A DNA stretch of 64,000 nt from Macrostomum lignano (GCA_002269645.1 NIVC01002245.1:62001-126000), one strand, 5' to 3'; counted from the stretch's first letter, positions 1 to 16,557 are shown. The notes: a model not told the origin generated them from the sequence alone. Made by a program: numbers and translations.

Positions 1-2049
1 AGCAGCAGCGCCTGCCAGCGGTTCAGCGTCAGCCCGACGGTCCGGCAGGCGAAACTGGGTAGCCCTCGGCTCCGCCTGCAGCTGCTGCTGGACAGAGTCA
101 ACTGGCTGACTTTCGCCGTCCACGGCGCCAGGATCAGGCGGAACGGGACCGGAGTTTGCCTGAGCAGGACTCATCTGCGACTGCTGGCGTCTCCGAAGCC
201 CAGCTGCTTTGCGCAGTTCGGCCTGGATGATCCCGGATGTCTGCTGGCCGACGGCGGCGGCGCCTGCAACCTGACGGCAGGCCTGCTGAACTGCGGGTCC
301 AGGAGCTTGGAGCTGAAGTTCATGTCAGCTGCGGTCACCCTGCTGTTCCCCAGTGTGAGCTGGCCGAGTTAGTTAGTCAGTTAGTTAGTTAGTTATTTAT
401 TTAGTTAGTTAGTTAGTTAGTTAGTTAGTTAGTTAGTTAGTTAGTTAGTTAGTTAGTTAGTTAGTTAGTTAGTTAGCTAGTTAGTTAGCTAGTTAGTTAG
501 TTAGTTAGTTAGTTAGCTAGTTAGTTAGTTAGTTAGCTAGTTAGTTAGTTAGTTAGTTACTTAGTTAGTTAGTTAGTTAGTTAGTTAGTTAGTTAGTTAG
601 CTAGTTAGTTAGCTAGTTAGTTAGTTAGTTAGTTAGTTAGCTAGTTAGTTGGTTAGTTAGCTAGTTAGTTAGTTAGTTGGTTAGTTAGTTAGTTAGTTAG
701 TTAGTTAGCTAGTTAGTTAGCTAGTTAGTTAGTTAGTTAGTTAGTTAGCTAGTTAGTTAGCTAGTTAGTTAGCTATGTTAGTTAGTTAGTTAGTTAGTTA
801 GTTAGTTAGTTAGTTAGTTAGTTAGTTAGTTAGTTAGTTAGTTAGTTAGTTATTTAGTTAGTTAGTTAGCTAGTTAGTTGGTTAGGTAGCTAGTTAGTTA
901 GTTAGTTAGTTAGTTAGTTAGTTAGTTAGCTAGTTAGCTAGTTAGTTGGTTAGTTAGTTAGTTAGTTAGTTAGTTAGTTAGTTAGTTAGTTAGTTAGTTA
1001 GTTAGTTAGTTAGTTAGTTAGTTAGTTAGTTAGTTAGTTAGTTAGTTAGTTAGTTAGTTAGCTAGTTAGTTAGTTAGTTACTTAGCTAGTTGGATTCTAC
1101 ATTTTCTTATATATTATTTTTTAGAAACCGGGTTGGTCTATGAGCGGTCAGTTCCAGCTAAGCGTCCCCCGCGAAGTTAACAAGCGCTGCATCAGAATGC
1201 AGCTGGTGAGCTCCGCCAATTTGACGAATTGATGCATTGTTTTGTTTAGGCGGGGCTTGGCAGCCGAATTACGGACTCAAACAGCATCCAAAGGGTGCAG
1301 ACTGATCCCTCCGTGCTCGCCTTCACCAGAACGCATCCGCCTGGCAGAGGCCGAATCAGTTCAGGAAGTTCTGGCTGGCTGACGCGGCTCAGGTTGACAG
1401 AAGCTTTAACCTGCTGCGGCTGGTGCAGCCCGAACGGTCGGCCGCCTGCCGCGTCGCCGACACCGTCAGCATCGATGCGGCGCCATCCGTGACTGGCGGC
1501 GGTGCCGAGCTCCATAAGCCGCTGCTGCTGCTGCTGCTGCCGCTGCTGCTCTTCCTGGCTGTCCTGACTCCGGTTGTCGGAGCGAAGCGGCCGCCGCCAC
1601 CGTCGCTGCTACTGATCGCCGCATCCGACGAGGTGCTCCGCCACGCCTCCACCGCTCGGCTGGTGCGGCGGCTGAGCAGGCGGTGCCGCCTCCGCGTCCC
1701 GAAGGCCGGCCTGAGCGACCTGCGGCCCGGCATGAGTCGCCGCTGCCAGCTGCTGCTCCTCGTGAGCCGCGGCCCCGACTTCAGTGACTTCCGCCTCGCC
1801 GACTGCCGCTCCGAGGTGGCGCGGCGTGAACTCCTGACCGTCCTGGAGACGGAGCGGCACCGCACGAGGCGGCTGCACCTCGGCGACGGTGGCGACTGCA
1901 GACAGTCCATGGAGCTGCCGCCCGCCCCGACAGAGGAGCTGATGGAGCTGGACGGCCCTGCGGAGGTCACCGCCAAGCTGGTGCTCCAGGAGCTGCGGCT
2001 GCCACCGCGGCAGAGCCGCTGGAGAAGCCGGACGGGCTTTGAAGTTTGA
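1..2049 (+). CDS. IL-17-receptor-like type I membrane protein with degenerate SEFIR/TIR-like cytoplasmic domain, copy 1 (5'-partial)
   Basis: Exons <1-354 (SSSACQRFSV...CFAQFGLDDPGCL...CGSRSLELKF), 1125-1205 (81 nt) and 1330-2049, all GT-AG and phase 0. TM segment [22 protein letters not shown] is followed by [44 protein letters not shown], which resembles SEFIR box1/alphaA/betaC (cf. IL17RA KIIVLCSRG). TGA at 2047-2049; AATAAA near 2658. Exon structure matches copy 2. Confidence 0.7.
367..1090. repeat. (GTTA)n microsatellite filling a receptor copy 1 intron
   Basis: Direct reading; GCTA/GTTG variants. Confidence 0.97.
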
Positions 2050-2582
2050 CAGACAGACAGACAGACAGACAGACAGACACTAAGACAGACAGACAGACAG
2101 ACAGACAGACAGACAGACAGACAGACAGACAGAAAGACAGACAGACAGACAGACAGACAGACAGACAGACAGACAGACAGACAGACAGACAGACAGACAG
2201 ACAGACAGACAGACAGACAGACAGACAGACAGACAGACAGACAGACAGACAGACAGACAGACAGACAGACAGACAGACAGACAGACAGACAGACAGACAG
2301 ACAGACAGACAGACAGACAGACAGACAGACAGACACAGACAGACAGACAGACACGGACAGACAGACAGACAGACAGACAAACAGACAGACAGACAGACAG
2401 ACAGACAGACAGACAGACAGACAGACAGACAGACAGACAGACAGACACTAAGACAGACAGACAGACAGACAGACAGACAGACAGACAGACAGACAGACAG
2501 ACAGACAGACAGACAGACAGACAGACAGACAGACAGACAGACAGACAGACAGACAGACAGGCAGACAGACAGACAGACAGAC
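2046..2582. repeat. (CAGA)n microsatellite starting at the receptor copy 1 stop codon
   Basis: Direct reading; source of the QTDR/LSVC junk ORFs. Confidence 0.97.
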
Positions 2583-3020
2583 ATATATACAATCTGTCAT
2601 AATCTACTATAATATAATATAATATAATTTGTATATAAGTTTTATATTATGTTATTGAATAAATTTTTCAACACAATAATTGCATGCTGTTGCCAACTGC
2701 TTAAAGGTTTACCAGATGTGTCCACTTAGCAGTTTTCCTCAGCGCAACCTCTTCATCATTCTCACAAAGAATCAGAGAAGTGCAGGTCACAGCCAAAGTT
2801 TTCCAAGTGCTCACAGATATTCCATGCATCTTGAAAGTTGACAGAGTTTATTTTTGAATAGTATGAAGCGCCATGCAAAGATCGGCAAAGTCTTCAGTCT
2901 CATTGGCATGCAGTGTCAACGAGCTGCCGATAATTACATGTATAAAATGTCTTCATCTTTTATAGGCAGCTGTATGAAGGACAACCCGCAGTCGGCAGAG
3001 CCTCTGAGCCCCGCCGCCGG

Positions 3021-15204: not shown

Positions 15205-15636
15205 AGGGGAGAGTAGGGAGAGAGTAGGGAGAGAGTAGGGAGAGGTGAGAGTAGGGAGAGAGTAGGGAGAGAGTAGGGAGAGAGTAGGGAGAGGTGAGAG
15301 TAGGGAGAGAGTAGGGAGAGAGTAGGGAGAGAGTAGGGAGAGAGTAGGGAGAGAGTAGGGAGAGAGTAGGGAGAGAGTAGGGAGAGAGTAGGGAGAGAGT
15401 AGGAGAGAGTAGGGAGAGAGTAGGCAGAGAGTAGGGAGAGAGTAGGGAGAGAGTAGGCAGAGAGTAGGCAGAGAGTAGGGAGAGAGTAGGGAGAGAGTAG
15501 GGAGAGAGTAGGGAGAGAGTAGGGAGAGAGTAGGGAGAGAGTAGGGAGAGAGTAGGGAGAGAGTAGGGAGAGAGTAGGGAGAGAGTAGGGAGAGAGTAGG
15601 CAGAGAGTAGGGAGAGAGTAGGGAGAGAGTAGGGAG
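15205..15636. repeat. 11-bp tandem repeat (GAGAGTAGGGA)n
   Basis: Direct reading. Confidence 0.93.
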
Positions 15637-15783
15637 TAGAAGGGAGAGCAGGGGAGAGTGGGAAATGAAGGAAAGCACCGTGAATAATAAATAGATGAAG
15701 AGTTGGGAGATGCTGGGGTGCTGACTGCTGAGCGGTCTACAGGACAGCCCACAGTCGGCAGAGCCTCTGAGCCCCGCCGCCGG

Positions 15784-16557
15784 TCACGGCGCCACAGCGC
15801 ACGACACGCCGATGCTGCCGAGGCTCTGCTGCAGCTGCTGGCCGTCTTCGCCCGTCCGCCTGAGCTCCAAGAATGGCAGCTCCACCCTGGCCTGTCCCGG
15901 ACACGGGCACCGGACATCCGGCAGCAGTCTGGGCAGCCTGGCGGCGTCAGCATTGATGAAGAACTGAGGCTGCGGCTGAGCTCGGGCCAACTGGCAGCTG
16001 ACGGGCCGGTAGAGCGCGCCGTGGCGGCCCAGCATGGCGTTGAGGCGGCGCAGGTCGGCGCCAGTCAGCGGCTCCGGCCGCGGCGGCCTCAGCGGCGGGT
16101 GCAGCGCGGCGCAGCCGGTTCCGTGCAGGCGGGTCACCAGACGGAGGCGCTGACCGCCCGCGCCGCCATCCAGCGGCTCCAGAGACGCCACGGGCAGGCG
16201 GGCGGGACGGCAGCGGGTGCTTGGCCGGCTGCCCCTCCAGCTTAGAGCAGTCGGACAGTGGCAGGTGGATTTGTAGCGCCGGGTTGGCAGCGAGTTGGCC
16301 GGCAGCTGAGTCGTGAGCTCGAATTTGTCGATGCAGACCCGATCGGCATTCTCCGCCAGATTCGGAGAATTTCGCACTCTTTGGCTAAGGTTGCAGTAAA
16401 ATGTAATTGTTAATGTTGTAGTCTTGTAGTTGTCAAATCTCAGGTTCGCGCTCCCGGCGCCCCAGCCGCAGGCAACGTGCTCAGTCTCGGATCTGAGCTG
16501 CTCTGCCTCTAGTAGCAGCAGAAACGACAAAATCGAAGCCAAGCAACTTGGCGACAT
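15784..16557 (-). CDS. Secreted tandem IL-17/PTTH-like cystine-knot protein, copy 2 (257 aa, intronless)
   Basis: ATG at 16557 opens a signal peptide (MSPSCLASILSFLLLLEA). Shares ACGWGAGS and Cys positions with copy 1 (RVCI, SLPTRRYKSTCHC, RCRP). From ARLPVASL onward it is near-identical to copy 1. Confidence 0.65.
   Translation of the reverse strand: MSPSCLASILSFLLLLEAEQLRSETEHVACGWGAGSANLRFDNYKTTTLTITFYCNLSQRVRNSPNLAENADRVCIDKFELTTQLPANSLPTRRYKSTCHCPTALSWRGSRPSTRCRPARLPVASLEPLDGGAGGQRLRLVTRLHGTGCAALHPPLRPPRPEPLTGADLRRLNAMLGRHGALYRPVSCQLARAQPQPQFFINADAARLPRLLPDVRCPCPGQARVELPFLELRRTGEDGQQLQQSLGSIGVSCAVAP

Follow-up and report, generated by a model that had tools for sequence, protein, structure and literature searches.

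In mammals, the tandem receptor paralogues TLR1 and TLR6 have been described as undergoing gene conversion over part of their length (PMC2077338), and in the clustered protocadherin genes of fugu and zebrafish the 3' parts of the variable exons are homogenised by conversion (PMC1852091), with a raised GC content at third codon positions (GC3) used as an argument for conversion in fugu (PMC1852091). In both cases the accepted reason is a need for one common module that the partners shared by the paralogues can use (PMC2077338, PMC1852091). At the S locus of Brassicaceae, the genes for the SRK receptor and the cysteine-rich ligand SCR (SP11) are linked and co-evolve (PMC4031107, PMC10316313), and in marine invertebrates IL-17 genes have expanded in tandem arrays (PMC8353272, PMC5457136). 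Here we describe a locus in a 64,000-nucleotide stretch of animal genomic DNA from Macrostomum lignano (GCA_002269645.1, NIVC01002245.1:62001-126000; the whole stretch is called the window below). Within its first 17 kb lie two tandem copies of one two-gene unit, about 12.1-12.8 kb apart. Each unit holds a membrane-protein gene on the + strand and a secreted-protein gene on the - strand, which converge tail to tail with 1.0-1.6 kb between them; we refer to them as the receptor-like and the ligand-like gene, or receptor and ligand for short.

The mosaic of divergence between the two units is real, and it makes this duplicated gene pair a clean instance of concerted evolution by region. Reading the sequence, we give a probability of about 0.75 to the view that the mosaic consists of two separate islands of interlocus gene conversion between ancient tandem paralogues, one at the 3' end of the receptor gene and one in the 3' half of the ligand gene. 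The process itself is known; its setting in two genes is unusual.

The duplicated two-gene unit

The receptor-like gene encodes a single-pass membrane protein whose cysteine-rich ectodomain is split over two or three exons, and whose last exon encodes about 38 juxtamembrane residues, a leucine-rich transmembrane helix and a cytoplasmic domain of 154 residues. Exon lengths, phases and GT/AG sites of this gene are identical between copies 1 and 2. The ligand-like gene has one exon only; its secreted, cysteine-rich product is 272 residues long in copy 1 and 257 in copy 2, and all six cysteines of the N half are kept between the otherwise diverged halves of the two ligands. The matching exon structure, these conserved cysteines, the signal peptides and the transmembrane helix argue that both genes are real. 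A tblastn search across the window found no third copy of either gene. The features of the two units, including the homogenised tracts R (receptor) and L (ligand), are as follows; repeat arrays in introns are from Tandem Repeats Finder (TRF).

1-354, + strand: receptor copy 1, cysteine-rich ectodomain exon; open from base 1 and cut by the window start; its 3' end is a GTGAGC donor, phase 0
355-1124, + strand: receptor copy 1, intron, filled by (TTAG)n at 367-1091
1125-1205, + strand: receptor copy 1, 81-nucleotide exon, phase 0-0
1393-2049, + strand: receptor copy 1, last exon (start approximate); ends ...TGFEV, stop codon TGA at 2047-2049
1402-2591: tract R, copy 1; last exon and (CAGA)n array at 2048-2583
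2592-2977: spacer between the convergent genes of unit 1; AT-rich, 35% GC
2978-3459: tract L, copy 1; ligand 3' half and 43 nucleotides of 3' flank
3021-3839, - strand: ligand copy 1; single exon, 272 residues, signal peptide, 11 cysteines
6555-6641, + strand: receptor copy 2, putative first exon; signal peptide; GTGAGT donor, phase 0
11375-11908, + strand: receptor copy 2, cysteine-rich ectodomain exon; open reading frame (ORF) that aligns to 1-354
11909-13293, + strand: receptor copy 2, intron, filled by (ACT)n at 11926-13274
13294-13374, + strand: receptor copy 2, 81-nucleotide exon
13506-14153, + strand: receptor copy 2, last exon; ORF 13527-14918
13506-14694: tract R, copy 2; its (CAGA)n array continues to 14901
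14902-15740: spacer of unit 2; contains an 11-mer minisatellite at 15205-15648 (444 nucleotides)
15741-16216: tract L, copy 2
15784-16557, - strand: ligand copy 2; single exon, 257 residues

For the last exon of receptor copy 1 an alternative in-frame acceptor would move the start to 1426. Ligand copy 1 can be divided into a variable part (residues 1-127) and a constant part (residues 128-272), the latter containing a module at residues 213-268 that resembles IL-17. The putative exon at 6555-6641 comes from a scan for hydrophobic N-termini and from sequence inspection. A GC-rich island at 6476-6641 holds TATAAA about 75 nucleotides upstream of this exon, an ATG and a signal-peptide-like ORF, and receptor copy 2 probably begins with this ORF. 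If so, copy 2 would have a first intron of 4.7 kb filled by minisatellite; a 2-kb 14-mer minisatellite lies directly 3' of the donor.

Homogenised tracts and their edges

In a blastn comparison of the sequence with itself, tract R (1402-2591 against 13506-14694) is 96.7% identical over 1192 nucleotides and tract L (2978-3459 against 15741-16216) is 96.9% identical over 482 nucleotides, and these two are the sole long non-tandem repeats in the first 20 kb. At a word size of 7 the comparison brings out just two further matches, one in the ectodomain exon (62% identity) and one of 49 nucleotides at an ACGWGAGS motif. Tract R covers the entire last exon of the receptor and enters the (CAGA)n array, and the exon itself is 98% identical in nucleotides, with 12 substitutions and one indel in 648. 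Tract L runs from about codon 127 of the ligand to 43 nucleotides beyond the stop and makes up the 3' 55% of the gene.

The points at which the copies switch from diverged to near-identical were placed by maximum chi-square, with values of 277 and 274 compared to permutation maxima of 21 and 15. In the ligand the switch is at 3459/16216, within the ORF. In the receptor it falls where the last intron meets the last exon, which in the coding alignment is the junction between the 81-nucleotide exon (exon B) and the last exon; it lies 0 nucleotides from the acceptor if the AG at 13504-5 is used and 24 nucleotides from it if the better-spaced AG at 13528-9 is used, and copy 1 is alike. A first-pass annotation of this DNA had described the receptor copies as near-identical from 1402/13506 through the cytoplasmic domain into (CAGA)n, which these figures bear out. 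The near-identity that it described for the 3' half of the ligand is also found, but reaches 43 rather than about 30 nucleotides past the stop, and of the two switch points that it placed inside exons, only that of the ligand is so located, the receptor switch coinciding with the intron/exon boundary.

The differences that remain within the tracts are not spread evenly, as in both they crowd at the 5' edge inside the gene. Tract L is about 90% identical in its first 60-70 nucleotides and then has 1 difference in 402 nucleotides, while in tract R nine of the 12 substitutions fall within the first 230 nucleotides. GC3 is 0.87-0.89 inside the tracts as against 0.56-0.83 outside, which is suggestive only, since all of the exons are GC-rich. 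The tracts are 0.5-1.2 kb long, a usual tract length for gene conversion. The pile-up of differences at the 5' edge, the raised GC3 and the ordinary tract lengths would all fit repeated conversion with variable end points.

Divergence between the copies

The contrast between the tracts and the rest of the two genes is strongest at synonymous sites. Nei-Gojobori estimates of synonymous (dS) and non-synonymous (dN) divergence between the two copies are:

Ligand codons 1-127: dS 1.6, dN 0.80
Ligand codons 128-272 (within tract L): dS 0.034, dN 0.010
Receptor ectodomain exon: dS 0.95, dN 0.46
Receptor 81-nucleotide exon: dS saturated, dN 0.73
Receptor last exon (within tract R): dS 0.053, dN 0.005

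Both islands thus have low dS and are under purifying selection, and synonymous divergence changes 20- to 50-fold at the switch points. Outside the tracts, the N parts of the ligands share 31% protein identity (E 5e-17), the ectodomain exon of the receptor (exon A) 49% at the protein and 62% at the DNA level (tblastn E 1e-21, 1-354 against 11552-11908), and exon B 22% at the protein and 46% at the nucleotide level. For the last intron, the intergenic spacer with its minisatellite removed and the 550 nucleotides upstream of the ligands, alignment scores do not exceed those of shuffled sequences. For spacer against spacer the local alignment score is 12, compared to a shuffle mean of 10.9 and a maximum of 14, with no word-7 blastn match, and low-stringency (word-7) blastn finds no homology between the flanks of the two units. 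The homologous introns of the receptor carry different microsatellites, (TTAG) in about 181 repeats in copy 1 and (ACT) in about 450 in copy 2. In the N part of the ligand and in exon A dN/dS is about 0.5, a value from two sequences with saturated dS, and positive selection on the variable parts can therefore not be shown.

Much of what the first-pass annotation had proposed from the sequence is in agreement with these numbers, namely that synonymous sites are conserved inside the tracts, that ectodomain exons and ligand N parts align loosely and that the spacers share no homology. A uniform dS along the genes, which it had named as grounds for giving up its interpretation, is not what we see, dS being 0.03-0.05 inside the tracts and 0.95 to more than 1.6 outside. 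Its suggestion of gene conversion, to which an equivalent non-reciprocal transfer between paralogues may be added, is strengthened by the 20- to 50-fold jump in dS together with the sharp breaks, the higher GC3 and the loss of flanking homology.

Several explanations of the mosaic can be set aside with these data. Constraint at the protein level is rejected since synonymous sites are conserved as well, and a recent duplication of the whole unit is rejected since the introns and the spacer are unalignable. With neither constraint nor recent duplication available, non-reciprocal transfer between old paralogues remains. Conversion mediated by complementary DNA (cDNA) was considered for the boundary at the exon edge and was rejected, as neither tract reaches a plausible poly(A) site: tract L ends 43 nucleotides past the stop while the likely poly(A) signal is about 165 nucleotides downstream, and the sequence beyond the (CAGA)n array of the receptor is unrelated between the copies. 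Conversion spreading both ways from one double-strand-break hotspot in the spacer was also rejected, because the spacer would then be homogenised too.

The unrelated spacer bears as well on whether there was one event or two. A single conversion or patch duplication of about 2 kb could have copied the last exon of the receptor, the spacer and the 3' half of the ligand together, with the spacer replaced later through deletions, insertions and minisatellite growth. The tracts do face each other across one spacer and have similar divergence (dS 0.053 and 0.034), and repeats turn over fast here, as seen in the different intron microsatellites and in the 444-nucleotide minisatellite of the unit 2 spacer. 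However, this would need complete replacement of the spacer on at least one side, and the unique spacers of 386 and about 370 nucleotides never align above shuffles although the exons flanking them differ by 2-3%. Also, the identity gradients climb toward the 3' ends of the genes and then stop abruptly. We consider a single event improbable, and with an unrelated spacer between the tracts two islands are the simpler account.

The two-island reading can be put as a sequence of steps. An old duplication of the unit would have left the comparable sequence saturated or unalignable everywhere except in the two islands, which non-reciprocal recombination between the copies would have overwritten, probably more than once. 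Island 1 would be the last exon of the receptor with the adjoining (CAGA)n and island 2 the 3' 55% of the ligand. They may stay alike because their products, the transmembrane and cytoplasmic domain in one case and the IL-17-like C-module in the other, serve common partners. Conversion may be unable to extend where the flanking DNA has diverged, and selection may remove those conversions that overwrite the variable 5' parts.

True paralogues or assembly duplicates

Since the region is extremely repeat-rich (29% tandem repeat), the near-identity of the tracts could be an artefact of assembly or polishing, either by correction of one copy with reads of the other or by placing divergent haplotypes in tandem. 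One of the tracts adjoins a microsatellite of 0.5-0.75 kb and receptor copy 2 has a 1-nucleotide indel, both of which would fit such an origin. The differences within the tracts do not look like errors, though. In the last exon of the receptor nine of the 11 substitutions before the indel are synonymous, where chance predicts 29% (binomial p=4.6e-4), and tract L has an in-frame indel of 6 nucleotides, with 4 synonymous and 3 non-synonymous changes. Errors of sequencing or polishing ignore codon position, so that differences which favour synonymous sites argue for true paralogues, and the two units, whose flanks have nothing in common, are no haplotig laid down twice. Judged by their sequence, the two units are true paralogues under selection and no assembly duplicates, with some residual doubt; an artefact is very improbable.

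The secreted and the membrane protein

A word-indexed search of a library of 5.8 billion clusters returned no homologue at E<=1 for the ligand, and none at E<=1 for the receptor. For the ligand pair, an exhaustive hidden Markov model (HMM) search of 1.84 billion representatives gave one match (E 3.5e-4) to 31 residues of a protein of 1934 residues, which we judged to be spurious as a relative. An exact-sequence look-up found the sequence not to be on record, two metagenome scans found no related loci, and sequence searches of the PDB found no relevant relative and no IL-17 chain. By these searches both proteins are orphans.

The secreted protein does have some likeness to IL-17. Five human IL-17 core sequences, entered by hand and possibly containing errors, were made into a profile, which hhalign aligned to residues 213-268 of the ligand with a probability of 80% and an E-value of 1.4e-5 over 57 columns, nearly the whole core, and the score of 31.3 is above all of 200 composition-preserving shuffles (maximum 19.0). 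The motifs D-x-x-R-x-P-x-x-L...C-x-C and LRR...G-x-x-C are in register in this C-module, whose cysteines are C203, C232, C234 and C268, the terminal C-x-C being reduced to one cysteine. The N-module around the first C-x-C scores 22.2 against the same profile in ligand 1 (shuffle maximum 19.2) and 15.2 in ligand 2, which is not significant. A BLASTP comparison of the N half with the C half gave no support for an internal duplication (E 0.18), and Pfam found no match at E<=10 for ligand 2 or for the isolated modules. An AlphaFold model of the ligand was unusable, with a predicted local distance difference test (pLDDT) score of 32. From the profile alignment we take the ligand to be a probable IL-17-like protein that has diverged very far and may have two such modules. 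If the IL-17-like reading holds, the switch point cuts the first module, and the variable part of the ligand is then not the complete N-domain for which it had been taken.

Less can be said of the membrane protein. Neither the whole receptor nor its separate modules had a Pfam match at E<=10, and a SEFIR profile, also entered by hand, gave an hhalign score of 20.7, inside the shuffle range (maximum 22.6). An AlphaFold model of the cytoplasmic domain has low confidence (pLDDT 55) and shows a small generic alpha/beta fold, for which Foldseek returned only generic alpha/beta matches from the PDB at E>0.02. The cytoplasmic domain contains no tyrosine. Copy 1 ends in ...GFEV, which we take to be a possible PDZ-type C-terminus. 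In copy 2 a 1-nucleotide deletion near 14112 shifts the frame and swaps the last 13 residues, and the ORF continues through (CAGA)n as about 190 (DRQT) repeats to 14918. Because the TGA of copy 1 overlaps the first GACA unit, a frameshift near the end of the receptor leads into a (DRQT)n-type tail. What copy 2 shows here could come from decay or from an error in the sequence, or be a variant form of the tail.

A possible ligand-receptor pairing

The adjacency of the two genes, their duplication as a unit and the parallel polarity of the mosaic favour a functional pairing. Even so, that the two proteins are ligand and receptor for one another is tentative, and we hold it to be somewhat against the odds. 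The tests made here lend no support to it, nor to two further proposals of the first-pass annotation, co-diversification of the variable parts and a signalling output shared through the constant ones. They could instead be unrelated neighbours in a conversion-prone interval, the tracts marking only where homology has persisted and reflecting no shared function. The membrane protein is without a known receptor or signalling domain, and the variable parts, with dN/dS at about 0.5, require no diversifying selection, both of which this explanation accommodates. It accounts less well for a pair that was duplicated as a unit with its tail-to-tail order kept, for the same polarity of the mosaic in both genes and for purifying selection on both tracts. 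We regard it as a serious possibility, if short of an even chance.

If the proteins are paired, the variable part of the ligand would bind the variable ectodomain encoded beside it and give each unit its own address. The constant halves would meet partners common to both units: for the IL-17-like module this could be a canonical receptor, unless the module acts in dimerisation, and for the transmembrane and cytoplasmic domain it could be one intracellular pathway. IL-17 signalling uses one common and one specific receptor chain, and the scheme proposed here is similar. The locus would then be a lineage-specific recognition module, in which an IL-17-like cytokine of two parts is teamed with a membrane co-receptor of its own, conversion keeps the output halves alike and the address halves diverge together. 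We find this module, taken as a whole, doubtful, and the lock-and-key reading that goes with it is attractive but unsupported.

A number of points weigh against the interpretation given here, and looking at them shows where it could fail. Only two copies exist and the searches found no orthologue, whereas the classical proof of conversion calls for paralogues that, within the tract, are closer to each other than to their orthologues. The similar ages of the islands hint at one event, even though the intervening spacer is unrelated, and tract R starts at an exon boundary, which a process acting purely at the DNA level does not predict. An assembly problem in a repeat-rich region remains a residual doubt. 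On the side of the proteins, the cognate status of ligand and receptor is something that we infer from the genes. The Pfam IL17 family (PF06083) matches ligand 1 over 19 residues with 12.4 bits, below the cut-off of 24 (E 0.22), Pfam and hhalign found no SEFIR or IL-17R features in the membrane protein, and receptor copy 2, with its frameshift near the end, may be decaying.

What the locus means depends on whether the proteins interact. If they do not, it is a clean but ordinary instance of regional concerted evolution, in an animal genome rich in repeats. If they do, it would illustrate how a ligand and its receptor can be copied and re-addressed together with their downstream wiring unchanged; that partial conversion can hold the signalling half constant and let the binding half diverge was already known, for receptors alone. 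Should the recognition module be true, tandem duplication could create new insulated ligand-receptor channels, and the locus would be an animal, paralogue-based analogue of lock-and-key loci of the S-locus type. The IL-17 family would also gain a very divergent branch, possibly of two modules, whose membrane partner is not of the SEFIR kind.

Other features of the window

At least 18.6 kb of the 64 kb (at least 29%) is in micro- or minisatellite arrays with a TRF score of at least 200. Between the two units there is a reverse-transcriptase fragment at 5014-5325 and an ORF of 206 residues at 4116-4736 on the - strand that belongs to no family, and together (4116-5325) these are probably remains of transposable elements. 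Scans with Rfam and for transfer RNA (tRNA) genes found nothing. Further features of the window are:

20870-22216, - strand: forkhead-domain exon, followed by a polyglutamine-rich region
24345-25541: apparently intact mariner/Tc1-type transposase ORF, 398 residues, with helix-turn-helix and DDE_3 domains
26681-27289, - strand: exon for a fibrinogen C-terminal domain (Pfam E 1e-22)
29147-33483: Gypsy-type long terminal repeat (LTR) retrotransposon, 60-69% GC; terminal repeats of 225 nucleotides, 97.8% identical
41057-41488: exon-like ORF with a weak match to FAD-dependent oxidoreductase (DAO) at about the Pfam threshold; 24-mer minisatellites on either side

A further (CAGA)n array at 21942-22190, in the intron beside the forkhead exon, indicates that this repeat is common in the genome. 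The Gypsy-type element has long gag-like and pol ORFs; the best relatives of its pol are 74-77% identical and lie in metagenome or run assemblies, and those with a name belong to teleosts, sea slugs and a sponge.

How the locus compares with known systems

The closest likeness is to TLR1/TLR6 and the clustered protocadherins. There, as here, tandem paralogues have a divergent 5' part that binds ligands or mediates adhesion, a 3' part (membrane-proximal, transmembrane and cytoplasmic) that is more than 98% identical with synonymous sites included, and a GC3 that is raised in the converted part. Unlike those systems, the locus described here consists of orphan proteins in two copies known from one genome only, and its mosaic is also present in an adjacent convergent gene for a secreted protein.

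This second gene gives the locus its resemblance to the S locus, where a membrane receptor gene likewise adjoins a gene for a small, secreted, cysteine-rich protein, and where the recognition parts are very divergent while the remainder of the receptor is conserved. The S haplotypes, however, are alleles, whereas these are tandem paralogues in an animal genome. SRK has a kinase domain, and binding and function are proven at the S locus, while here they are proposed.

With the IL-17 family the ligand-like protein has in common that it is secreted, that its C-terminal module aligns over 57 core columns and that its genes are duplicated in tandem. It differs in falling below the Pfam threshold, in the four cysteines of its C-module with one cysteine of the terminal C-x-C missing, and in being longer, with a possible second module at the N-terminus and a neighbour that lacks SEFIR. 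Compared to all of these systems, what is new here is the simultaneous mosaic in both convergent genes, in a pair of orphans with a possible link to IL-17 and a non-SEFIR partner.

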